Shown here one piece after another: positions 17-47,973 of a stretch of DNA of 64,000 nucleotides. The stretch lies in the sequence record MZ622713.1; one strand, written 5' to 3'. Made by a program: the position numbers and the translations under genes. The notes beneath the pieces were generated by a model. That model was given only the letters and a program-made list of their open reading frames with translations, had not been told where the DNA came from and searched no databases. The first letter of the stretch is position 1; each line of letters begins with the position of its first letter.

Positions 17-3000
17 ATGTTGCGTGACCACCAAGTGGGTAAACGTTACATTACTAAAGTGGAGTTGGTTGCACCTTGGTTCTTGAACACCAGTGACCCT
101 GAGACACTGAACGTTCCAGTTAACACCATGTTGCAGAACTTGGCTTTCCGTGCTGTAGTGCACTACAGTGATGGTTCTAAGTCTGACGAGTTAAGTATCG
201 ATGGTCAGAAAATCCAGTTACTTGGTTTGAATGAGCACAAGCCTTCTACTCCAAGTCAACGTGGTACTTTGACTCTGGTCTACAACCTAGACCCAGACGA
301 ATACATCTACGAAGCGCAAGCTGGTAACCCTAACCAGTACCGAGCGTCTTACTGGATGTTGGCAGTACCGTTTGATGGTGCGTACTCTCCGAAGCTGTAT
401 TCTTACCCTACTTGGGTAAACGGTCAGTACATCCTAAAACACTTCCTGACTGATTTAAACCGCAGCTTCATTATTGATGCGACCGATCACGTTCGTATTA
501 ATGAGTTGTCTCCGGCTTTCCGTCCTACCACTTACGGTGTGGAACAAACACTGGAACTGAACTGTCGTCTGAGCGATGTAGTCCCTACATTCAAACCGAT
601 GATCATGCGTCAGTCAACTACGTTTGTATTGAAAGCTCCGGGTACTGAAGATGGCAGTAAGTTTGACGTTCGTTATTCTTACGACAAAGGTTCTTACTCA
701 GACCCTACGTTCAAAGCCATTAACCAAGCTGACGGTCGTCAAGAGATTGTGTTCGGTGGTGAATACGAAACCATGGAAGAATGGCTAGACCAAACTTACC
801 ATGCCGTAGAGCCGGGTTACAACCCTCAGCGTGAGAAAGGTCCTATCCCACCTACTCACTTCGAAATCCTAGCGAGTTCTGGTAAGACATACGAATACGA
901 GATTAGCCGTTATGCTGAGAAAATGTATTTGGATGTTCAAGAGCCTCAAGGTCGTACGATCTTTGTTCGCTGGATTCATGAGACTATCCAAGGTGACCGC
1001 TTATTGTTAGCCACCACTGGTATCTCTATTGACGTTACTGAAGGTCCTGATACAGAAACCCCAGTGCCGACTACTATCGAGTTTGATAGCTCTGTTCCGA
1101 GCAGCGTGGGTGAACTTCAAGTTATTGAGTTCAGTGGTCGTGTGTATGACCAGAAAGGTGCATTGGTCACCGATGGTCTGACTAAGATGTTGGTTAAGGG
1201 TGGTGTCAACCACAACTCTCTCCCACGTCGTGTTGCTATTGGCTTGGATGGTTCTTTCCGTTTCTTCACATGGTCTGAACGTGTTAGTGGTTCTACCGAG
1301 ACTTTTGAGTTCGACTTTGAAGTTGCTGGTGAAGAGCCTGAGTATTTCTTGACAAAAGAAATTCGCATCACTACTAACCAAGAACAACAAACCGGTGAGT
1401 TCTTCCCTTACACTCCTACTAAGGTAAGTGTGAGCAAAGCGGGCCGTGCATACGGTCAATTGTTAGATGCAGAAGGCAACTCTCTACGTGATACCGAGTT
1501 CTTCTCTTACGTAGACACAGACCTTGATTCCATTCGTCGTGAAACCACTGACGAACAAGGTAAGTTCTTGTTGACTCGTATTCGTAAAGAAGGTCAAGAC
1601 CGTACTACGTTCCACCTGATCGTTATGGGTAACCGTCATCAACACGTAATTCGTTGGGAAGAAACAACTCCTTACGGTGACCGTGTCGTATTAGACGTGG
1701 AAGACATGACGTTTGTCGGTGAAGAACAGTTGTCTGTTAAAGGCCGCGTTTACGACCAATACGGTGACCTAGTAGTGGGTGTTCCTGTTGAAGTGGGTTA
1801 TGGTCCATTATGGGCTCCTTACGCAGAAACCGATTCTGTTGAAAACGGTAAGTTCGAGTTAACTGGTTCTCCTAAGACTCCGGGTGCTGTTTACCAAGTG
1901 GTCGTTTGGACTGAGAACGATTTCAAGTTCGGTACCGTGGAATGGACTGAAGCACCTAAGATTGCCTTCGATATCGTCATGGACCCTGACAACGCTCCAG
2001 AAGCTCCGGCTGGCACGAGTGTTCGTATTGCGGGTCAATTGGTGGATGAAGACGGCAATAACTTTACTAGTGAAAGCCGCACACCGGTTTACATGAAAGA
2101 GATTAAGGATGCTGAAGAAACCATCATCTACGCTGGTTACGACGGTAAGTTCGAAGCTGAAGTTGGCCCTTACGGGGACTGGGAAGAAACGACGTTCGTA
2201 TTCCGCCTAGAAAACAACAACACTGGCAGTCACATGATTCGTTGGATGGGTGAACCACCACGTCTTGCTGAACTGCGATTCGACGATGGTCTTCCATTGA
2301 GTGGTGAAATGGGTGTTCCTGTGACACTTACTGGTACCACGTTCGATCAACACGGCGATGCATATCTACCGGGTGTACCATTTGAGTTTGATGTAAGCTG
2401 GGCGGGTAAATCCGACAAAGCACAATCAGACGGCAACGGTACTTGGTCTTACCGTGCGGTAGGTGACAAAGTAGGTGACACCACTTACTCGTTCTCTTCC
2501 AACAACCGTGTTATCGGTTCTTACACCATCAACTACACTGGTGATGTGACGCTGAACGCACTTCCAAACGATGATAAGATTTTCCGTGTTCCTTACGGTA
2601 TGAATCGCACCATCGGTTGGTACGTTCTTGATGAGCAAGGTAAAGGTAAGGCTGGCGTAGAACTTAATGTACGTCAGGTGTCTACTATCTACTCACCTGA
2701 ACGTGATCTAGGTACTGTTACGACCGACGAGTTTGGTATTGCTACATTTGTAGCACCTTACATCGAAGAAGAGAAAGACGGCACGTACGTTGCTTCTCTG
2801 GGTCTTAAGGAAGCGCAAGTTGTTGTTAAGTGGAGTGATGAAGCAGGCATCAGTGTTACACTAGAAGCCTTGAACGTCCCACCATTGACATTCGGTACAA
2901 CGATGCAGTTCACTGGTAAAGTCTTAGACGAAACCGGCGCACCGCTTATTGTTGATCGACCTTACACTGGTCTCTGGCTATCTGCTTACGACCGTAACAC

Positions 3001-4106: not shown

Positions 4107-7100
4107 ATGGCAGGTATTATCAAGGGGAATCTCCTAGACGCTAATGGCGACGTGGTGATCCCGGGTAAACCGGTCACACTAAAGGCCGTCCGATCGGACG
4201 GCCTACCTGATGTGACTATCACGACCAACGCCAATGGTGATTGGTCATTTGAAGTTAATGCTGAAGTCGACTCAACGGTCGACTTCACTTTTATTTACAA
4301 CGGGGTTGATGTTGGCGCTCATGCGGTGCGCTTCTATGAAACCGCTGAAGTAGTTGGTCTACCTTATTCTAACTCTCGAGTTTTATTTGGCAAAACAGCT
4401 ACCATGGCATTTGCTGTAAAAGACCCGGAAGGAAAGGGTATTCCTTACGCAGATGTTACTATTCACCGTGGAACTGAAGGTTCTGAACCTGTCGCTACTT
4501 TAAAGACAGACCAGTTCGGAATCGTGACTTACACTGCACCTCCACACTCGGTTTATGAACGAGTGGACTTTTACGCCAAGGCTAACGACGCGACTGGTCA
4601 CTGGGGTGTTCAGTATGAGGACGGAGAAGAAGAGTTCGTAACGAAGTTAGTGGATTTCGATTACACACAACAAGTCGACGTTAACCGTCGTTTGGCTGTG
4701 TTCGGCGGAGGTCTGGAATCTTGGGGTATGATGGTCTGGATGCCACCTAAGGTGTTGTTCAATAAAGACACGTTGTCCGAAGTTCCCTTCAATGACGAAC
4801 CTGTTAATACTAACCACGTTTACATCTCGACCGACCCATTGCCTGCTGGACACCATAACTTGGTGTTTGCGATGGAAAGTGAATACCGTGAGTTTGTTGT
4901 TGAGTCCGGTAACTTCCCTGATGAAGTCATCACTGGCACACGTTCATTGTACCCTACGGTAGAAAACTTCCCTAACTTGATCTGGTGTTTGATGGAGGTC
5001 AATCTCCAAGTAGATGGCGCTGATCATCGTCCTCACGGTCTGATGAGTGTTACTGTAGAGGAAGACGGTACTTCAACAGAAGTGTTGGTTCGCCCTAATG
5101 GTGTGTTTGATTACATCGTCAAAGGTGATATTGGAGACGTTAAAAACTTCGTTTACAAGAACCCTGAAGGTGAAGAGATTGGCACACAGACTGCTACAGT
5201 CTTCAGTGCTCGCGTACGCGCTTGTGAGTACTCTGTTGATACACTTCCTACCTTGGGTAACGGTAAAGTTGCTTTTGCTGTAACAGACCCTGCTGGCAAG
5301 CCTGTGGTTAACGCCTTTACTTTGGTTAATGTGGGACATCGTGGTCGTGAACTCGTGGCCGTTTCGGATGAATACGGTATCGTAGAACTAACAGTAGAAC
5401 GTGAACCGGGTGAAAACGACACCGTCGCTCTCATCAACGTGGGTGGGTCGAATTTCGTTCGCTACGTGGTTCAATTCACTGGCGTATCAGTGGCATCTGA
5501 ATTCCGTGATTTAGATATTCCAGTACAAGGTGATACGGTTCGACCTATTACGGTAACTGGTAAAGTCTATGACCAAGGTGGGGTGGGCATTAAACCTCCG
5601 CGTTTAGGTATCTTTGATAAACAGTCTTTGACTTATCAACCTTTTGATGCGACACAGATTGGTAACGATGGTTCGTTTACTTTCGAGTACGGTCCATTGG
5701 CTAAAGGTGTTCACGATTTGGTGATTGGTTCTTCTGGTATCATTTCTGAGAAACGAACTCACTGGTCCATCGGTTTCCCTGATGGTCTTCGAGCTGAACG
5801 CATGAACTACTCGACATTACCTGACGCTTACGTTGGTGATGAAGCAGTAGTGGCTTTCCGAGCAAGTATCGTAGAGAACGCGTTATTGGTTCCAGTAGTT
5901 GGGGTTCCGGTTGTAGTCTACATCAGTTCGACCACTTTACCTACGGTTGAGTTGGCATCCAAAGAAACTGATGCTAACGGTATCGCAGAGTTCGTTATCC
6001 CACCTGAATTAGAGGGTGTGGAACTAAACGGCACTTATTCTGTTCGTGGTGTGATTGGTCCTAAGGATGTCACTACATCTATCAGTTGGGTGGATTCACG
6101 GGAAGTTACTAGTGGATTTGGTAACCTACAGTACACGGCAGAAATAAACAGTGGTGACGAGGTGGTCTTCAACTACCGCCCTCTAAACCAAGACGGTGTG
6201 GAAATGCCGGACTACGGTATAGGTTTAACTACCCGTGACCATTTCCAGATTGGCTCTTACGTCCCAGAACGCATCTTAAATGCCGATGGTTCTCGTACAG
6301 CAGTTTTCCCTCCAATGGAAGACGGTACTTACGATGTGGTATTGCACTCTGGTAACGCTCGTAACTATCTTTCTTTAACTTGGGGTGCGTTTGCAGTTCC
6401 TGTTCCAGCTGGCGTCTTGCTAGACTTTAACTCACCTACCGCTGCGGCTGTAGGGTCTAAAGCGGTTATCTCTGGTAAGGTAGTTGACGCTGACGGCTTA
6501 GTCATTAAGCCTGTAGGGGATATGGAATTAGAGTTACGTGATGAGCTAGGTACTAAGACTCAAATCAAGATCAATCCTGATGGCACTTGGTCTTTTGAAG
6601 CGACGTCCGACAGTGCTAAGTTGAAAACTTACACTCTAAGAAGTGACAACACTACGTTGTACACCCATCAGGTTAACTTCATCGCTACACCTACTTTGGA
6701 GTTCACAGGCTACACTGGTGACTTGGTTGACAAAGCCCATAAAGCTAGACTTGCCGTAATGGTGAAAGATAGTGAGTCAAACGGTGTTGAAGGTATTCTG
6801 GTTGATTTCGATGACACTTATCATGATGGTGTGCAATACGGAAGTATCTTAACCGATGAATTTGGTATCGCTGAAGTTGACATCAGTTTTGACTTGACTA
6901 CTGTGGTTGCTCCTACCACCCATCAAAACGAAGTAACTGCTTCTATCCGTCATACTGAAATCTCAGATAACAAAACTGTTCGTTGGGCTTCTGATTCTCA
7001 GAACTCAGTTATCGACATCGTTGACCTTGTGGTGAGTGACAATAACTACGAAGGTAACAAAGTTAACATTTCTGGTAAGTTAGTTGGTGCGATCAACCAA

Positions 7101-28854: not shown

Positions 28855-29234
28855 TTTTTAACCAACTAACATGTATTATATGTTACAAAACCTTTTCACC
28901 CATTTTTAATGAACGGTTTTCTTCCTTACGTAAACACTACCAAAAGTGAACACGTGAGGGGGGAAAGGGGGGTGTCAAGGTTGAGTGGGTGTCAAGGTTA
29001 GTTGGTTCAAGTTAGTTAAAAGAATCGGGCAAAGCCCAAGATAATTAATATTAATATATATTAATATATCTAACTAGTATGACTTCCTTACAACGTAACG
29101 AGTAGAACGAGTGAAGTGGTTAAGGTAACAAGTCATACGTATAAGGTGAGTAGTAAACTTCGTAGGATATCCGTTGAGGAGTCCTACAAGGGTTTATACT
29201 GCTTTTTAAATATTTAGTTAAGGATTAAGGTAAA
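28855..29234. other. Non-coding island 1: G-runs, 13-bp direct repeats, 29-nt pure A/T tract, hairpins (origin-like)
   Basis: No ORF over 380 bp. G6-AAA-G6 at 28958-28972; GGGTGTCAAGGTT at 28970 and 28987; A/T only at 29041-29069. Confidence 0.55.
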
Positions 29235-35886: not shown

Positions 35887-36213
35887 CGGATAATATATTA
35901 TATGTACTAAACTAAATCCGTCGAAGACCCCCTAGAAAGGATGGGAAAGGGTTATTTTTGCATACGAGTTATAGTAGTACTCCTTAGAGTGATCTATGAG
36001 GTACGAATAGTCACGGTGAGTGTTGTAGTACGAAGTACGTAAACACGATAAAAGGAGTGTACTACGTATAACGAGTAGGTGGGTATAGGTTTGGAATCAT
36101 GTAATAGGGATACTGTGATTCAGTAAAAGAATTTAGTTCTATATAACTTAGGGGTAAATAAAACTGAGTCGTGTAAGTTATTAGTTAATAACGTTAGTAG
36201 GAGAAGATTCAAA
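35887..36213. other. Non-coding island 2 with a multi-branched stem-loop and a promoter motif
   Basis: No ORF. Stem 35974-35985/36052-36065 encloses two smaller hairpins. Shares 9-11 nt words with island 1. Confidence 0.5.
36139..36153 (+). promoter_or_regulatory. Phage promoter motif CTATATAACTTAGGG
   Basis: Matches CTATATAACCTAGGTG upstream of chimallin (47879-47894). Confidence 0.55.
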
Positions 36214-37057: not shown

Positions 37058-38215
37058 ATGTCCATTCAGATTCCAGAAGTAACTGACCCTAAAGTAGCAC
37101 ACGCGCTAGACATCATTAAAAACCGTTACTTAGAAATTCGTACCGTAAAGGAAGTAGCGGAGCAAATAGGTATTTCCGATAACACCTTAGGTAAACGTTT
37201 CGAGATCAGAGGTTTAAAACCACCTCGTTTTTACCTGAACGGATTACGTAAGGATTATGCGGAAAAACACGTCAAAGAAAACATCAAAACTTTGAGCACT
37301 ATCGCCAAAGAGATGGGATTCAGTAAAACTAACCAACTTCATACTTGGTACCTAGCTGCCTTTGGAGTAAGAGCGACAGAAGTGCGTCGTGGTATCGGTA
37401 TTCCTAAAGAAGCTCACAATGGTAACAAACCACTGTCTGTGATAGCTGGAGAGATTAAAGCGAAGATCGATCAAGAAGCCCACCACATTCAATTTGAACG
37501 TGAGCTGTACCAACCTTATGGATATGGTCGTAATGCTATCTACCTTGCTTTCTCTCAAGCTTACGGTTGCACTGTACGGGAACATTTGATCAACACTCAA
37601 TTAGCGTACGTGGAACGTAAGATTCGCGAACAAGGTTATTGTATCCCGTCTTTGTTGAAGCACACCATTTACAACAACGCTTCAGCTTTGAGTAATGCCT
37701 TTGAACGCAAATACGGTATGTGTTCTAGTGATTACGCGATTAAACATTCCATTGGTGTGAGAACGTTTATATTCGGGGAATCTCGTTGGGTGACGTCAAG
37801 TTTCGTTAAAGAACTGTTAGAACACATCGCTGAAGATTTGTTAACGGCTCGTCAGGAAATGGAAGCGTTGCGTAATTTCTATCAGATCGGTACGAAATCT
37901 TGGAGAGAGATCTTTATCTCTTGTGCTGGCATGAGTCCAAAACAAACTCAACTGGCTATCGAAATGGAGATGATACTTCACATCGTACAAACCACTGATT
38001 GGACTATTCAAGATATCTATGAAAGGCTGAATCGTAGTCGTCGTGACTCTTGGTGTGCGCGTTTCCGTGATTACTTTAACTGTTCACCGGCTCAAGCAAA
38101 GACTAACCCTAAGTTGGTTATCCGTAACTATGACTCAAAACAGTTTAAGCCTTTAGTGGAAGAAGTATTCAATCTGATTGATAAAAACGATGGAGTGGAA
38201 GATCTCGCAGCATGA
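37058..38215 (+). CDS. Protein with three tandem AraC/MarA-type HTH DNA-binding domains
   Basis: VKEVAEQIGIS...IAKEMGFS...FGVRATEVR; second unit ...AFSQAYGCT...FERKYGMCSSDY; third unit ...AGMSPKQ...FRDYFNCSPAQ. No effector domain. Confidence 0.8.
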   Translation: MSIQIPEVTDPKVAHALDIIKNRYLEIRTVKEVAEQIGISDNTLGKRFEIRGLKPPRFYLNGLRKDYAEKHVKENIKTLSTIAKEMGFSKTNQLHTWYLAAFGVRATEVRRGIGIPKEAHNGNKPLSVIAGEIKAKIDQEAHHIQFERELYQPYGYGRNAIYLAFSQAYGCTVREHLINTQLAYVERKIREQGYCIPSLLKHTIYNNASALSNAFERKYGMCSSDYAIKHSIGVRTFIFGESRWVTSSFVKELLEHIAEDLLTARQEMEALRNFYQIGTKSWREIFISCAGMSPKQTQLAIEMEMILHIVQTTDWTIQDIYERLNRSRRDSWCARFRDYFNCSPAQAKTNPKLVIRNYDSKQFKPLVEEVFNLIDKNDGVEDLAA

Positions 38216-38931
38216 ATGACGAATTCAAACAGTTGCTCATGAGTGATCTGAAGGATTGGTTGGAAGATAACTATTTGGGTAAGGTGTCCATGCAAGATAT
38301 TGCTGATCAACTTGGTACCCATATCCCGGTGATGTACGAACTGTTCTTTGAACACTTTGGTTGCACGCCGGGAACCTACTTAATTAAGAAACGACTAGAA
38401 AAAGGAAAGGAGCTGATATCCAAAGGTACCCGACCTACTATAGCGTGTAATTACGTAGGCTATAAACACTTCCAATCATTCCGGACAGCTTACCGTGAAC
38501 ATTTCGGTGAGTTACCCGAAGTGGATTTTGAAGAGTCCATGGATATTCCTACCATGAATGACTATGGTAAAGAAACTATGGACCGATATTATCCATATGA
38601 GTTAAGGATAGAGATATTAAGATATTTGAATGAGAATATCAAAACTAATATCCCATACGGAGATGTGGAGGCAAAATTTAAACTTCCCAACCGTAGTCTA
38701 AATGAAATGTTCCTGCACTTCTATAACCTGACTTACATCGAATGGCGTAGAGACGTGAGAGTCTCAATTGCCAAACGTAAGATTCGTTCAAACCCGTCCA
38801 TCAGTCTTTCAGAACTGGCGGAAGAGGTAGGGTCTTGCAGTTCCCAATATTTGAGTAAGCAGTTTAAAGAGGTTTATGGTATTGCGCCTAAGCAGTACGC
38901 AAAGAAATTGAGAGGTTTATGTGTTAACTAA
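38212..38931 (+). CDS. Protein with two tandem AraC/MarA-type HTH domains
   Basis: SMQDIADQLG...FGCTPGTYL..KRLEKGKELI...VGY...FRTAYREHFGELP; then ...LSELAEEVG..S.QYLSKQFKEVYGIAPKQY. ATGA overlap with the previous gene. Confidence 0.85.
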   Translation: MNDEFKQLLMSDLKDWLEDNYLGKVSMQDIADQLGTHIPVMYELFFEHFGCTPGTYLIKKRLEKGKELISKGTRPTIACNYVGYKHFQSFRTAYREHFGELPEVDFEESMDIPTMNDYGKETMDRYYPYELRIEILRYLNENIKTNIPYGDVEAKFKLPNRSLNEMFLHFYNLTYIEWRRDVRVSIAKRKIRSNPSISLSELAEEVGSCSSQYLSKQFKEVYGIAPKQYAKKLRGLCVN

Positions 38932-39619
38932 AGATCAACAATGGGCGGCTCTAAACATCGCCATTGAGAAACATTACCTTCAAGGTAACGCTCGTGAACT
39001 CATCCTAAACGAACTTGGTATCAGTGAAACTTGCATCCATCATTTGTATTCTGGACGCGGGGACCTAACGCTACATAATCAAATCACCGAACTCCGTATG
39101 TTAAAGGCTAAGAGTTTGTTGGATGACCGATCGATCAAAATCCCTGACATTGCTAAGATGGTTGGTTACAAGGCTGGTAAATCCTTAAGAGAACATTTCA
39201 CTAAGTATTACGGAATGTCTCCTTCGGACTATCGCTTACGTCCTAAGTTCGATGAGCTGACGGAAAAGTTATTTTATCGTCACCCTAAGCTCAACCCGAC
39301 CAGACAACTCGCAGTGAATAACTACGTAAAGCAAAACTGTCGTTCTTCAGAAACCACGGTATATGCAGTAGCTGAGAAATTTGGATTGACTACCAAGGAA
39401 GTAGAGTTGGTTATTAAAGAACACCACGGGAAGAGCTTTAAAGATCATCTAGTGAGTCTGCGGTTGACCCATGTGAGTTCTCGTTTAACCCGTAGTCATA
39501 AGACGGTTCGAGAATTAGCCAAAGAAGCTGGGTTCATTGATTTCTCTTTCTTTGTTAGAAAGTTCGAAAAAGAATATGGCATGGGACCTAACCAATACCG
39601 TACTTGGACTCGTCTGTGA
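38921..39619 (+). CDS. Protein with two tandem AraC/MarA-type HTH domains
   Basis: LRMLKAKSLL...IPDIAKMVGY...FTKYYGMSPSDYR; then ...VRELAKEAGF.D.S.F.RKFEKEYGMGPNQYR. GTG start overlapping the previous stop. Confidence 0.85.
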   Translation: MLTKDQQWAALNIAIEKHYLQGNARELILNELGISETCIHHLYSGRGDLTLHNQITELRMLKAKSLLDDRSIKIPDIAKMVGYKAGKSLREHFTKYYGMSPSDYRLRPKFDELTEKLFYRHPKLNPTRQLAVNNYVKQNCRSSETTVYAVAEKFGLTTKEVELVIKEHHGKSFKDHLVSLRLTHVSSRLTRSHKTVRELAKEAGFIDFSFFVRKFEKEYGMGPNQYRTWTRL

Positions 39620-39647
39620 TTATTTCTTTACCAGATGTCAATTGTAT

Positions 39648-40220
39648 GTAAGCGATGCAAATAACTGAACTTTCTAGTCTAGCGAATCCGAACAACTTGG
39701 TGTATACCGCGTGATCAGTCTAGTACGTTAGATTCTTTAGAGTGTCGCTTACAACCTTTTACTCTTAATCACTGGCGTGTTAGGTGTATAAAGTGCAGAT
39801 CGTCGCCCCCACGACGATCCCTATCCCTTCAGCCCAGAGACTCCTTAGTTTAACAAACATCGATGTGTTATTCTCTCTGGGCTGAACCCTATAAACCCGG
39901 TAGCTCTGACTATTTCCCTTGTCACCTTAGTTGCCTATTGTTGCCGGGTCCCTATTCAAACGGAAGTCGAGCCTTCTGTTTGTAGGACGGCAGTGCCTTT
40001 AACACTACCGTCCACAGCGGTTGACCCCCTGACCGCTTTAGAAATGAGAGTGTTTTCTTCAGCTCCAAACATTCTGATAAGGGGTTGCTATGCTGAGGCT
40101 AGCCGGCTGAGCTTTCGACCGCACAAAGACTAATGTCTTTTGAGAGCTCAGTTCGGATACGTTCAGTAAAGATGTATCATTCCACTGCTTCACCATCCCA
40201 TGAGGGATGGTGCTTTTTTG
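39648..40220 (+). ncRNA. Candidate ~570-nt highly structured non-coding RNA, not matching any family I recognise
   Basis: No ORF on either strand. At least eight 7-15 bp stems, with G-U wobbles mostly favouring the + strand. TATG (phiKZ late promoter, +1 = G) at 39645-39648 coincides with the first stem base. Ends in an intrinsic terminator. Confidence 0.75.
40191..40220 (+). terminator. Intrinsic terminator closing the structured RNA
   Basis: CACCATCCC-ATGA-GGGATGGTG followed by CTTTTTTG. Confidence 0.8.
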
Positions 40221-40259
40221 CATTTTAAATATTTTAACGAAACTTTAAAGGAGTTTTAT

Positions 40260-41225
40260 ATGTCTACATTGCGTGCATGGTGTGTTGGTGGTGCTGGTAT
40301 CAACGTTGGCTCGGCTTGGAGAAAATCCCTAGACCGTTTGCAAGTAGCCGAAGTTGATTTTGTTGGTTTAGATACCTCCACAAACAACCGCCCAGATGAC
40401 GACGCCTTTGTGGTAGAATCTCTAGCCAACACTCGTGGTGGTGGTAAGAAGCGTACTCTAAACCGTGACCTCATCCCTGATTTTGTGAAGCAAATGTTGG
40501 TGAAACATCGCCCGGGCGATTTCAACGTTGTTATCTACAGTGGTGCAGGTGCTTCTGGTTCTACTATCGGTCCATTCCTAGTTCGTGCTATGATGGATGC
40601 TGGTATTCCGGTGGTGTCTTTCTTGATCTTGGATCAAACAACAGACATCGAATTTGAAAACACATTGGCGACCCTTCGTTCCCTTGACGGTCAGCGTAAG
40701 CATTTCAACATGCCTGTTGTTCTTGATGTATTACAAAACAACGAACGTATGACCCGTGGGCAAATGAATGATATCGCCGTAGATCGTCTGAACCTTCTAA
40801 GCTTGTTCTTAACTGACAAACATGAAGAAGCAGACTATGAAGATATCCGTCACCTACTAAACTACTCTAGTGTGATCGATATCCCACCTGCGCTAACCCG
40901 TATCGAGTACTACGATGCTGAAACCCTAGACCAACGTCAAGGTGTTGCTGTAGCTAGTTACTCTTTGTACGACCAGCGTGATAATGTTCGTTCTGTTCAA
41001 ATTGGTAAGGGTTACCGTGTGACTGGTGTAATGTATCCTGACACACGCACTCCTAACAAAACAGGTGAGTTGCACATGATGTTGGAGTACGATAGCATCA
41101 CCGAACAAATCCTAGAAGACTTGGAGCGTTCTGAACAACAAGCCGTGGAACGTCAGTCACGTTTCAATAAAGTTCGTCCTAAAGACCTCACAGAAGGCGC
41201 TGACGGCGATTCAATGGTTTGGTAA
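40260..41225 (+). CDS. phuZ: Phage tubulin PhuZ
   Basis: CVGGAGINVG, GGGKKR and tubulin signature-like YSGAGASGSTIGP motifs; acidic C-terminal tail ending DSMVW. Start set at ATG 40260 behind AAGGAG. Confidence 0.92.
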   Translation: MSTLRAWCVGGAGINVGSAWRKSLDRLQVAEVDFVGLDTSTNNRPDDDAFVVESLANTRGGGKKRTLNRDLIPDFVKQMLVKHRPGDFNVVIYSGAGASGSTIGPFLVRAMMDAGIPVVSFLILDQTTDIEFENTLATLRSLDGQRKHFNMPVVLDVLQNNERMTRGQMNDIAVDRLNLLSLFLTDKHEEADYEDIRHLLNYSSVIDIPPALTRIEYYDAETLDQRQGVAVASYSLYDQRDNVRSVQIGKGYRVTGVMYPDTRTPNKTGELHMMLEYDSITEQILEDLERSEQQAVERQSRFNKVRPKDLTEGADGDSMVW

Positions 41226-47752: not shown

Positions 47753-47864
47753 GAACTGAATACCTATTATATGTAAATAAAACTTTCTCCGACCTCACGG
47801 TTGGAGTGGATAGGACTGGTATCGAAATATTTAAGACATAAAATCGAGTGATTACCGACGTTCT

Positions 47865-47894
47865 AAATATTTTCAAACCTATATAACCTAGGTG
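47865..47894 (+). promoter_or_regulatory. Phage promoter upstream of chimallin
   Basis: AAATATTTTCAAACCTATATAACCTAGGTG, near-identical to 57307-57334 and sharing its core with 27661, 36139, 52906 and 63038. Confidence 0.65.
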
Positions 47895-47973
47895 TTAAGC
47901 AAGTGGTATTAATAAATGCCCCGGTGTTTAATAACGTTATTAAATATTGAAACTCAGTAACAAAGGATCAACC

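Follow-up and report, generated by a model that had tools for sequence, protein, structure and literature searches.

A probable large structured noncoding RNA gene in the Gorgonvirinae jumbo phages of Vibrio and Photobacterium

The window analysed here is a stretch of 64,000 nucleotides of sequence record MZ622713.1 and corresponds to Vibrio phage phiKT1019. It harbours an array of AraC-type helix-turn-helix genes followed by a gene-free stretch of about 570 bases and then by phuZ. In view of its elaborate predicted fold, its conservation and the lack of a match to known RNA families, it is very likely that this stretch is a new gene for a noncoding RNA, and the largest 'empty' gap in the annotations of these phages would thus be a gene. 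The phiKT1019 element has a length of ~571 nt and starts 28 nt 3' of the stop codon of the AraC-type array. A terminator scan detected no terminator between the AraC-type operon and the element. Gorgonvirinae are nucleus-forming jumbo phages of Vibrio and Photobacterium. Chimalliviridae phages possess a protein 'nucleus' and their own RNA polymerases, and to our knowledge almost nothing is known of their noncoding RNAs, save for a few short ones.

We searched for homologs of the element. Using blastn, it was found in five distinct Aphroditevirus sequences. The copies of the genus Tidunavirus were reached by tblastn with the neighbouring AraC-type protein, followed by a search with covariance model R1, built on the 3' domain block, which matched three copies (E-values of 3.6e-6, 0.0028 and 0.015). 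They are found in phages phiKT1028, pTD1 and VP4B, in the syntenic intergenic region. The element is present in all eight distinct related sequences of the two genera, with lengths of ~427-570 nt in the relatives of phiKT1019, and its locus in the Gorgonvirinae is always just 3' of the AraC-type gene array. Judging from these searches, every sequenced Gorgonvirinae phage carries the putative RNA gene. The original prediction had placed it between the AraC array and phuZ. This description holds in Aphroditevirus, where phuZ lies directly downstream, but the tie to phuZ does not, as Tidunavirus phages are devoid of phuZ (PMC10587174) and keep the RNA at the same locus. Their downstream genes are homologous, with phuZ alone missing. 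Thus, the RNA would be a Gorgonvirinae gene for which the link with phuZ is not essential.

Beyond the known isolates, scans of IMG/VR with exact or gapped patterns and with PhuZ yielded only chance matches among the matches listed, as did searches of JGI metagenomes and GTDB genomes. The chance matches lay in unrelated, mostly coding DNA, and the sequence labelled L224 is VP4B itself. The covariance models found no match beside phuZ in four other Chimalliviridae that we checked. Upstream of phuZ there is a gap of 656 nt in RisingSun and a gene-poor stretch of approximately 1.5 kb in Miami. Homology of these regions with the element is not supported by pairwise alignments against shuffled sequences or by three covariance models. 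By eye, the RisingSun gap contains GGCUAGC, UCGACCG and UACUUUCAG, in the same order as in the element. We found nothing in the literature describing this RNA.

The boundaries of the element are marked by sequence signals; these and all the features described below are on the + strand. At the 5' edge, the promoter-like 9-mer ATTGTATGT (39641-39649) holds a TATG (39645-48) whose G is the first paired base of the first helix, P1. This coincidence, on which the original prediction relied, recurs in all eight sequences, in which TATGT is invariant. The form ATTRTATGT occurs four times in the 64-kb window, in each case on the + strand and at the 5' border of intergenic DNA. Late promoters of phiKZ have a TATG whose G is +1, some middle promoters of that phage also carry TATG, and TATG by itself is insufficient as a promoter there (PMC4666361). 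By analogy, transcription would start at G39648; as the motif is shared with some middle promoters, it does not establish the late class that had been proposed. We found no transcriptome of any Gorgonvirinae phage in the literature.

At the 3' end, where a terminator had been claimed at 40191-40220, the terminator scan returned an intrinsic terminator at 40191-40219. Its stem (40191-99/40204-12) has nine pairs, six of them G-C, with a loop of 4, and is followed by CTTTTTT as the U-run. Across the genera, four pairs of the stem change on both sides and the T-run is invariant. Immediately beyond lie the AT-rich block TTTTAAATATTT (40223-34) and the ribosome-binding site of phuZ (together 40223-40259), which are probably the promoter and leader of the downstream gene itself and thus outside of the RNA. 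The window has only two exact copies of the AT-rich 12-mer (29204 and 40223), both located about 30-37 nt ahead of a start codon. Tolerating one mismatch brings the number to five, for 0.66 expected, and the block is nearly invariant across Aphroditevirus. The phage group thereby gains candidate promoter and terminator motifs.

Between these boundaries, all the stems listed in the original prediction were found in the phiKT1019 sequence. The 5' domain (39648-39752) is closed by P1 (39648-58/39742-52; 11 bp with two G·U), in which seven of nine pairs differ on both sides between the two genera. The domain measures 105-112 nt in all eight sequences; within it lie a hairpin, GGU-GUAU-ACC (39699-39708), and the segment GGUGUAUACCGCG, which is conserved. 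Between phages 2 TSL-2019 and USC-1 it is 97% identical, compared with 52% for the third codon positions of phuZ. No consistent cross-genus structure was obtained for its interior, and the MAFFT registers in the domain differ by one column.

A row of peripheral hairpins follows. The first module (39786-39819) is composed of the linker GUAUAAAGUGCA (39786-97) and the 8-bp hairpin P2b (39798-805/39812-19, loop CCCCCA), with two compensatory pairs between phiKT1019 and 2 TSL-2019/PDCC-1. The linker segment GUAUAAAGCGCA is conserved in Tidunavirus too, and the linker and P2b module is absent from USC-1, 5 TSL-2019 and Aphrodite1. Next comes the long hairpin P3 (39828-39886), with a perfect 13-bp stem (39828-40/39874-86). 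In hand alignments, one stem position of P3 shows the four Watson-Crick pairs C-G, U-A, G-C and A-U, and CC/GG flips to GG/CC in the USC-1 group. The apical palindrome of P3, CAUCGAUG (39858-65), is invariant in Aphroditevirus; it is not conserved across genera, being variable in Tidunavirus, and we rejected kissing-loop dimerization through it on this account. P4 (39895-39949; stem 39895-904/39940-49, 10 bp with two G·U) is variable: its site is occupied by a hairpin of unrelated sequence in 2 TSL-2019 and PDCC-1 and by none in the short forms. Three stem changes distinguish the P4-site hairpins of 2 TSL-2019 and PDCC-1, with pairing kept in all cases. Altogether, three peripheral hairpins are missing in USC-1, 5 TSL-2019 and Aphrodite1, and the remainder of the element is kept.

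The central part (39957-40075) comprises four hairpins, Ha (39957-65/39974-82; the originally listed 39957-66/39973-82 is also in the sequence), Hb (39986-95/40003-12, nine of ten positions paired and one C·A; loop CCUUUAA), Hc (40016-21/40032-37, listed as 40016-22/40031-37 and present in that extent as well; loop with ACCCC) and Hd (40048-53/40069-74, loop with CAGCUCC). Ha and Hd show one compensatory pair each, Ha shows in addition five one-sided G·U changes, and hand alignment of Hb revealed G-C/C-G and A-U/G-C swaps. The loops of the central hairpins are invariant within Aphroditevirus. RNAalifold predicts pairing of CCCU (39887-90), in the linker CCCUAU (39887-39892), with GGGG (40081-84), both segments being invariant in Aphroditevirus save for one U-A to U-G change. 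We tentatively propose that this predicted pairing closes a central multi-helix domain, the caution being due to the lack of covariation. Covariance model R2, made of the central block, found no match in Tidunavirus, which indicates that this block is genus-specific. A central domain that is not conserved between genera fits poorly with a single rigid fold.

In contrast with the central block, the 3' domain (40087-40151) is conserved in both genera. It is made of hairpin He (40087-93/40098-40103), the palindrome AGCCGGCU (40101-08) and helix Hf (40107-15/40143-51), which carries a single-stranded CGACCGC (40116-22) and an insert hairpin (40125-30/40135-40); the longer stem first listed here, 40103-16/40142-56, is in the sequence. 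An A-U pair of He is G-C in the other genus, and Hf has three pairs with two-sided changes, one pair showing three pair types. The palindrome is invariant in the eight sequences. It is the only lead towards self-association of the RNA, and it sits in helix strands rather than in a loop. In the 3' tail, the motif CCACUGC (40182-40188) was counted in seven of the eight sequences; 2 TSL-2019 and PDCC-1 have ACACUGC instead, and CACUGC is invariant in all eight, with flanks that vary in sequence and length.

The two terminal domains may be linked by long-range pairing. The candidate strands are AUCCGAA (39686-39692) and UUCGGAU (40152-40158), the latter within a conserved AGUUCGGRU whose AGUUCGG is invariant in 8/8 sequences. 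Seven base pairs are possible in seven of the eight sequences, and VP4B, with a one-base deletion in the first strand, can form six after re-registration by hand. The variants are A/G or C/U opposite U/G, all of them one-sided and giving G·U, and they are therefore consistent with pairing rather than proof of it. Two long-range complements had been noticed originally, and both exist in phiKT1019. UCCGAA/UUCGGR is kept in all eight sequences, but the proposed pseudoknot ACTGAAC/GTTCAGT is specific to phiKT1019 and complementary in no relative. The kept complement, ATCCGAAC/GTTCGGAT in phiKT1019, lies within an inverted repeat of 11 nt that is 91% complementary.

Folding analyses point to the + strand. 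The minimum free energy of the phiKT1019 + strand is -198.4 kcal/mol, compared with -149.9±6.5 for dinucleotide shuffles (z of -7.50, none of 100 shuffles as good), and the z value of the - strand is -4.32; for pTD1 they are -9.2 (+) and -4.4 (-). The strand assignment based on wobbles in the original prediction agrees with the alignments, in which the helices have 34 G·U cells and no A·C cells, the exception being a C·A mismatch that one sequence shows. Such wobble variants, G·U on the + strand and none A·C, would be meaningless in duplex DNA or on the opposite strand. A small-protein gene was rejected, since no ORF keeps its frame or extent: when the five Aphroditevirus sequences are compared, those of 25 codons or more vary in frame, in length and in whether they are present at all. 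The indels of the Aphroditevirus alignment, 17, about 60 and about 65 nt in length, are not multiples of three.

Covariation was assessed on the eight distinct sequences, which represent about six lineages. In the Aphroditevirus alignment A1 (96 pairs, 97.8% paired), nine of the 96 pairs change on both sides, and in the two-genus alignment A8 (42 pairs, 96.4% paired) 15 of the 42 do. After column shuffling, these numbers fall to 3.1±1.3 and 6.0±1.7, respectively, and 0 of 500 shuffles reach the observed value in either case; given that related sequences can beat column shuffles without structure, the slid controls, with 0-2 such pairs for A1 and 1-5 for A8, are the fairer comparison. In A8, the VP4B row is off by one base at P1 and at the long-range pairing, so that pairing is understated at these places, and P3 and Hb contribute further compensatory changes in the hand alignments. 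Covariation among homologs had been set as a test of the RNA reading, and the compensatory changes are clear in both alignments.

The RNA is far better conserved than the synonymous sites of phuZ. Between lineages, the identity of phuZ third codon positions is 52-58%, while that of the RNA is 74-79% in the central block, 73-86% in the 3' domain and up to 97% in the 5' domain. The adjacent AraC-type protein shows 41-44% amino-acid identity, and the RNA is thus more strongly conserved than the neighbouring protein genes. These comparisons indicate that the element is under strong purifying selection. Together with the compensatory changes, the lack of a conserved ORF, the + strand specificity and the boundaries set by TATG and terminator, they support the original reading of a noncoding structured RNA.

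No known RNA family accounts for the element. As anticipated in the original prediction, a search of Rfam 15 at the gathering threshold gave no match in the 64-kb window, including for ROOL, GOLLD, OLE, HEARO, raiA, RNase P, tmRNA, 6S, SRP, group I/II introns, riboswitches, self-cleaving ribozymes and RNAIII, all covered by that release. At E<=10 over 39500-40350, we obtained one 15-bit noise match, on the terminator, and at E<=1 nothing relevant was found in the three Tidunavirus loci. ARAGORN detected no tRNA or tmRNA genes in the window, which together with the Rfam result agrees with the reported absence of tRNA, tmRNA, RNase P and intron signatures.

We consider it likely that the element is a new structured RNA gene of the + strand, independently transcribed and acting in trans. 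The non-virion RNA polymerase of the phage would start at G39648, from the TATG-type promoter, and stop at the terminator, which would yield a discrete RNA. This RNA may fold into the 5' domain closed by P1, a series of peripheral hairpins that are in part dispensable, the genus-specific central multi-helix domain and the conserved 3' domain, with the 5' and 3' domains tied together by the 7-bp long-range pairing. The junction or strand segments common to both genera are GGUGUAUACCGCG, AGCCGGCU, AGUUCGGGU and CCACUGC. As cross-genus conservation resides in these segments and not in the apical loops, our guess is that the molecule acts in trans as a folded RNA that serves a ribonucleoprotein, or an assembly made of RNA alone, as its scaffold or subunit. 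We found no pointers to a protein partner or target of the RNA.

The apical loops are the basis of an alternative that we regard as unlikely, namely a base-pairing regulator of the type of Staphylococcus aureus RNAIII, a 514-nt RNA with 14 hairpins whose C-rich loops bind ribosome-binding sites. The pyrimidine-rich loops of the element would then act on purine-rich ribosome-binding sites of the phage or the host. The unpaired bases are indeed C-rich and G-poor, with about 2.5 C per G, the GC skew is negative across the element, the loops CCUUUAA, ACCCC, CAGCUCC and CCCCCA are invariant in Aphroditevirus, and an invariant Tidunavirus loop, UCCUCCA, resembles an anti-Shine-Dalgarno sequence. However, the loops are not conserved between genera, as opposed to the non-loop segments. 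Furthermore, a duplex scan of 47 translation start regions within the window revealed no favoured target, the best scores merely tracking G-rich ribosome-binding sites.

In both genera the element lies directly 5' of one conserved operon, a position that might also be that of a cis-acting leader or attenuator. Transcripts from the TATG promoter would then extend into phuZ, or into a 97-codon gene in Tidunavirus, only if termination is overcome, and the structured RNA would be a sensor or an early-termination by-product. Short RNAs derived from 5' UTRs by premature termination are known in phage 201phi2-1 (PMC11512511), and the order of promoter 9-mer, structured RNA, AT-rich motif and gene recurs in one more intergenic region of the window. 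Nevertheless, we find this quite unlikely. At about 570 nt, the element is several times the size of known riboswitches and attenuators, its terminator is strong (9-bp G+C-rich stem, 6 U) and kept with compensatory changes, a separate promoter-like AT-rich block lies 3' of it, and the first downstream gene differs between genera. The phuZ ribosome-binding site contains UUAAAGG, the complement of the Hb loop CCUUUAA, but the match amounts to seven AU-rich pairs (-6.8 kcal/mol) and ranks 13 of 47 genes, and the loop is absent in Tidunavirus; regulation of phuZ by this pairing thus fails.

As no terminator follows the AraC-type operon, the RNA could derive, entirely or partly, from the 3' untranslated end of the operon mRNA, processed or not, with no promoter of its own. 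Its constant location after the array and the short distance to the stop codon would fit. We deem this distinctly improbable given the invariant TATG with its G as the first base of P1 in all eight sequences, the recurrence of the 9-mer at three other intergenic edges and the much faster divergence of the AraC-type genes. In any case, such an origin would alter how the RNA is produced and not its nature. Lastly, a DNA-level element (a replication origin, a packaging site or a tubC-like PhuZ centromere of the TubZRC type) is extremely unlikely, in spite of its location next to phuZ in Aphroditevirus and the AT-rich block after it, as there are no direct repeats or iterons in 39600-40270 (zero families) and no shift of GC skew or gene orientation at the element, its folding is strand-asymmetric, and phages devoid of phuZ keep it.

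Returning to the trans-acting folded RNA, an RNA of 430-570 nt with several domains and no Rfam relative would be a new entry among the large orphan RNAs of bacteria and phages, several of which proved to form unexpected assemblies. The same genome contains a second candidate for a conserved structured RNA at 28879-29206. It is possible, although rather doubtful, that the element is the first known representative of a class of large structured RNAs particular to nucleus-forming jumbo phages, perhaps together with that of 28879-29206, acting as a catalyst, scaffold or self-assembler rather than as an ordinary antisense regulator or leader. It would then take part in a process peculiar to these phages, for instance traffic across the nucleus of the phage or escape from defences that target RNA. 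The system is tractable, as phiKT1019, Aphrodite1 and pTD1 are cultured and natural 'minimal' variants exist. Antisense knock-down works in jumbo phages (PMC12571901).

The element can be compared with several known systems. The tubC centromere of TubZRC partition systems consists of arrayed direct repeats in DNA to which TubR binds. Like tubC, the element is noncoding and immediately 5' of a gene for a tubulin of the TubZ/PhuZ family; unlike tubC, it has no direct repeats, no tubR-like gene is found in the annotations, it shows covariation of the RNA type and it persists without phuZ. Closer in origin are sRNA005 of 201phi2-1 and sRNAgp182 of phiKZ, RNAs of <250 nt upstream of a tail gene (PMC11512511). 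They share with the element their status as Chimalliviridae noncoding RNAs conserved among related jumbo phages, and a layout in which a phage promoter, putative in our case, and then a terminator precede a gene; the element is 2-3 times larger, at another locus and with a multi-domain fold. RNAIII has a similar length and, like the element, is a string of hairpins with domains closed by long-range helices and with loops rich in C and poor in G; it has a promoter (for the element, a predicted one) and a terminator of its own. It is not homologous to the element, which has no embedded peptide gene, and whose C-rich loops are genus-specific, with no target singled out.

The original prediction had likened the RNA to OLE and ROOL. 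This stands for size and complexity but not for homology, as neither sequence nor structure homology relates the element to ROOL, GOLLD or OLE, for which cryo-EM structures are available (PMC12286853). It also differs from them in its narrow distribution, a single subfamily of jumbo phages of Vibrio and Photobacterium, and in not being next to tRNAs, which its phages do not have. Nevertheless, it resembles these RNAs in its size class of about 430-570 nt, its many covarying helices, its conserved junction sequences and variable peripheral hairpins, and its lack of a conserved ORF, and, like GOLLD and ROOL, it is phage-borne, with neighbours that give no clue to its function.

Vibrio phage phiKT1019 (MZ622713.1) belongs to the family Chimalliviridae and is a jumbo phage that forms a nucleus (PMC10587174); the window corresponds to its final 64 kb. 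By blastn, the stretch studied here is 100% identical to positions 214460-215100 of that record. The largest intergenic gap within the window (39620-40259, 640 nt) lies directly downstream of three tandem AraC-type genes (37058-39619; 385, 239 and 232 aa) with HTH_18 domains (E-values from 2e-21 to 2e-30), and upstream of the tubulin gene phuZ (40260-41225). Its G+C content is 0.45-0.49 vs ~0.41 in the flanks, and C is in excess over G. All the stems of the original prediction were found where it had placed them, and the proposed terminator (40191-40220) was recovered as a 9-bp stem (40191-40212) followed by CTTTTTT. The minimum free energy of the + strand is -198.4 kcal/mol, vs -149.9±6.5 for dinucleotide shuffles (z -7.5); the z-score of the - strand is -4.3. 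Given these stems, the + strand z-score and the terminator, the observation of a structured RNA is confirmed and exceeds chance.

The gap is present in all Aphroditevirus phages identified by blastn (2 TSL-2019, PDCC-1, USC-1, 5 TSL-2019 and Aphrodite1), between the same two flanking genes; 5 TSL-2019 and USC-1 are identical across it. Alignment revealed a long form of ~570 nt (phiKT1019, 2 TSL-2019 and PDCC-1) and a short form of ~430 nt (USC-1, 5 TSL-2019 and Aphrodite1) that lacks three peripheral hairpins and keeps the rest, and each sequence folded individually yields the same helices. These gaps are devoid of annotated features except for a 37-codon, - strand ORF coding for a hypothetical protein in the GenBank records of USC-1 and 5 TSL-2019 (2615-2728 in both L004 and L006, our extracts of these genomes), inside the 3' domain of the RNA. 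This ORF is absent from the other phages; we rejected it as a gene, and it is probably a mis-call.

Using the adjacent AraC-type protein as a tblastn query, we reached three further loci, in the Tidunavirus phages phiKT1028, pTD1 and VP4B. Here the AraC-type array is again present, followed by a 656-941-nt gap and then by homologs (36% and 45% identity) of the two genes 3' of phuZ in phiKT1019. phuZ itself is missing from all three, as already published for pTD1 and phiKT1028 (PMC10587174). A covariance model of the 3' domain matched the + strand of the gap in 3/3 phages (E-values 3.6e-6, 0.0028 and 0.015). Both genera share the initial TATG, helix P1 (39648-39658/39742-39752 in phiKT1019) with a 5' domain of 105-112 nt containing GGUGUAUACCGCG, the linker GUAUAAAGCGCA, hairpin He (40087-40093/40098-40103), the palindrome AGCCGGCU, helix Hf (40107-40115/40143-40151), AGUUCGGGU and CCACUGC, and the terminator. 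The central hairpins Ha to Hd (39957-40075) were not found in the three Tidunavirus loci with a covariance model of that block, and a different, smaller set of hairpins replaces them. The pTD1 copy has folding z-scores of -9.2 (+ strand) and -4.4 (- strand). As Gorgonvirinae comprises no named genera other than Aphroditevirus and Tidunavirus, the element is subfamily-wide, and it is independent of phuZ. Between the RNA terminator and the next gene, in the place of phuZ, the Tidunavirus loci contain ~150 nt of moderately conserved noncoding DNA (4709-4850, 4715-4858 and 4683-~4830 in extracts L051, L052 and L053, respectively). The AraC-type array keeps its position throughout Gorgonvirinae but its sequence diverges fast, the last copy sharing 41-44% identity within the genus and 26-31% with Tidunavirus. 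Host-type transcription factors are a surprise in phages with their own transcribing polymerases.

Two covariation analyses, strand preference, and selection and coding analyses agree that the element is an RNA structure. Collecting homologs, as the original prediction had proposed, yielded two-sided changes in excess of shuffles. For the five distinct Aphroditevirus sequences and a hand-curated structure of 96 pairs, 97.8% of cells are paired and nine pairs show two-sided changes, vs 3.1±1.3 in column shuffles (0/500 reach nine) and 0-2 when partners were slid by 1-3 columns. Across both genera, eight sequences were compared, with a spacer linking the 5' and 3' domains for the count; over 42 pairs, the paired cells amount to 96.4%, and 15 pairs show two-sided changes, vs 6.0±1.7 in shuffles (0/500) and 1-5 in slid controls; these figures are conservative, since VP4B is off by one column in two helices. 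The covarying pairs belong to P1 (7/9), the terminator (four), Hf (three) and He (one). P3 (39828-39840/39874-39886) and Hb were poorly aligned by MAFFT, and hand alignment adds compensatory changes; at a single P3 position, four different Watson-Crick pairs occur.

The Aphroditevirus helices contain 34 G·U and no A·C cells, a count somewhat biased by allowing G·U in the structure definition; nevertheless, had the other strand or duplex DNA been what counts, A·C would be seen at internal positions. In line with the earlier claim that wobbles favour the + strand, one-sided changes are G·U apart from a single C·A in the hand-aligned Hb. Between lineages, the central block is 74-79% and the 3' domain 73-86% identical, vs 52-58% at phuZ third codon positions and only 41-44% for the neighbouring AraC-type protein; the 5' domains of 2 TSL-2019 and USC-1 are 97% identical. 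Comparison of the homologs revealed no conserved ORF, and no direct repeats were detected in the element.

Two pseudoknots had also been proposed. That of ACTGAAC with GTTCAGT is limited to phiKT1019, its counterparts in relatives not being complementary. The other, pairing (A)UCCGAA with UUCGG(A/G)U (39686-39692/40152-40158), is kept in the relatives: 7 bp can form in 7/8 sequences, and a one-base deletion in VP4B leaves six after re-registration by hand. All changes are one-sided (A or G opposite U, U opposite A or G, and C to U opposite G in pTD1 and VP4B). For the 5' strand, the local pairings predicted instead vary from phage to phage, which favours the long-range pairing, without proving it.

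TATG(T) is invariant in 8/8 sequences and, as predicted for phiKT1019, its G is the first base of P1 in every one of them. TATG defines the late promoters of the phiKZ non-virion RNA polymerase, with G as +1, although it is insufficient alone and also occurs on some middle promoters (PMC4666361). The 9-mer ATTRTATGT has only four copies in the window (28875, 35897, 39641 and 47766), all on the + strand; each marks the upstream boundary of an intergenic region, with the next start codon 200-610 nt away. As intergenic DNA makes up only ~6% of the window, this distribution independently argues for a promoter. It is likely a phage promoter motif from which long leaders or noncoding RNAs arise; two of the leaders, 35901-36200 and 47770-47965, show no more than mild structure (z -2.3 and -1.9, respectively). 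The 3' end carries a terminator whose stem covaries and whose T-run is invariant. The promoter-like 9-mer and the conserved terminator suggest a discrete RNA of ~571 nt, from G39648 to ~40219. The AT-rich block TTTTAAATATTT (40223-40234), immediately after the terminator, probably serves the downstream gene as a promoter of its own. This exact 12-mer has only one other site in the window (29204-29215); both follow a T-run, ~30-37 nt before a start codon, and with one mismatch there are five matches vs 0.66 expected. It would probably represent a second promoter class, of the AT-rich type used early by other jumbo phages (PMC11512511).

A second candidate structured RNA (~28882-29206, + strand) was found in the 380-nt intergenic region 28855-29234. 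The region starts with the same 9-mer, ATTATATGT (28875-28883), ends just before TTTTAAATATTT (29204-29215), and has a + strand z-score of -6.4. Its identity is 82-90% in all Aphroditevirus phages, and 83-85% over nt 99-286 in pTD1 and VP4B. It holds G-runs and tandem GGGTGTCAAGGTT (28957-29000), and has no annotation anywhere.

The element is thus conserved, highly structured, + strand and noncoding, with a promoter-like motif and a terminator at its ends. We consider it likely that it is a discrete RNA acting in trans through its fold, as a ribonucleoprotein subunit or an RNA assembly; our confidence in any specific activity is much lower. Alternatively, it is possible that it serves as a leader or attenuator of the downstream operon, which is conserved, and a second gap in the window has the same layout; nevertheless, its size counts against this, as do a terminator that is both strong and conserved and the promoter-like block that follows. 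A regulator similar to RNAIII, acting by C-rich loops, would fit the ~2.5 to 1 ratio of unpaired C to G and the anti-Shine-Dalgarno-like Tidunavirus loop UCCUCCA, but the loops differ between genera and no target stands out. Conservation across both genera lies in helix strands and junctions, each genus has its own apical loops and central domain, and peripheral hairpins can be lost, a pattern more typical of fold-based action than of seed-based antisense. That the RNA is the 3' end of the AraC-type operon mRNA would bear on how it is made, not on its identity, and a DNA element is effectively excluded.

No Rfam 15 family matched the window or the Tidunavirus copies, as had been expected, and ARAGORN found neither tRNA nor tmRNA, in keeping with the original prediction. 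The literature searched contains no description of this RNA, and no member beyond cultured isolates was found among the matches listed from IMG/VR, JGI metagenomes and GTDB genomes. Next to phuZ, none of three covariance models gave a match in Klebsiella phage Miami, Erwinia phage RisingSun, Shewanella phage FishSpeaker or Aeromonas phage pAEv1810. Other Chimalliviridae do have long gene-poor stretches directly 5' of phuZ (2345-3000 in the RisingSun extract L035, 1491-3000 in the Miami extract L034), and the 656-nt RisingSun gap contains TATG and a + strand terminator, with z-scores of -2.25 (+) vs 0.16 (-). By eye, GGCUAGC, UCGACCG and UACUUUCAG appear there in the same order as in the phiKT1019 element; no statistical test supports homology, and we did not retain this gap as a homolog. 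The distribution is narrow, with eight sequences in one subfamily, and the evidence for structure is good for so few. As the element fails every available test of family membership, it is a candidate new RNA class, within an already known broad kind, the large structured RNAs of unknown function.
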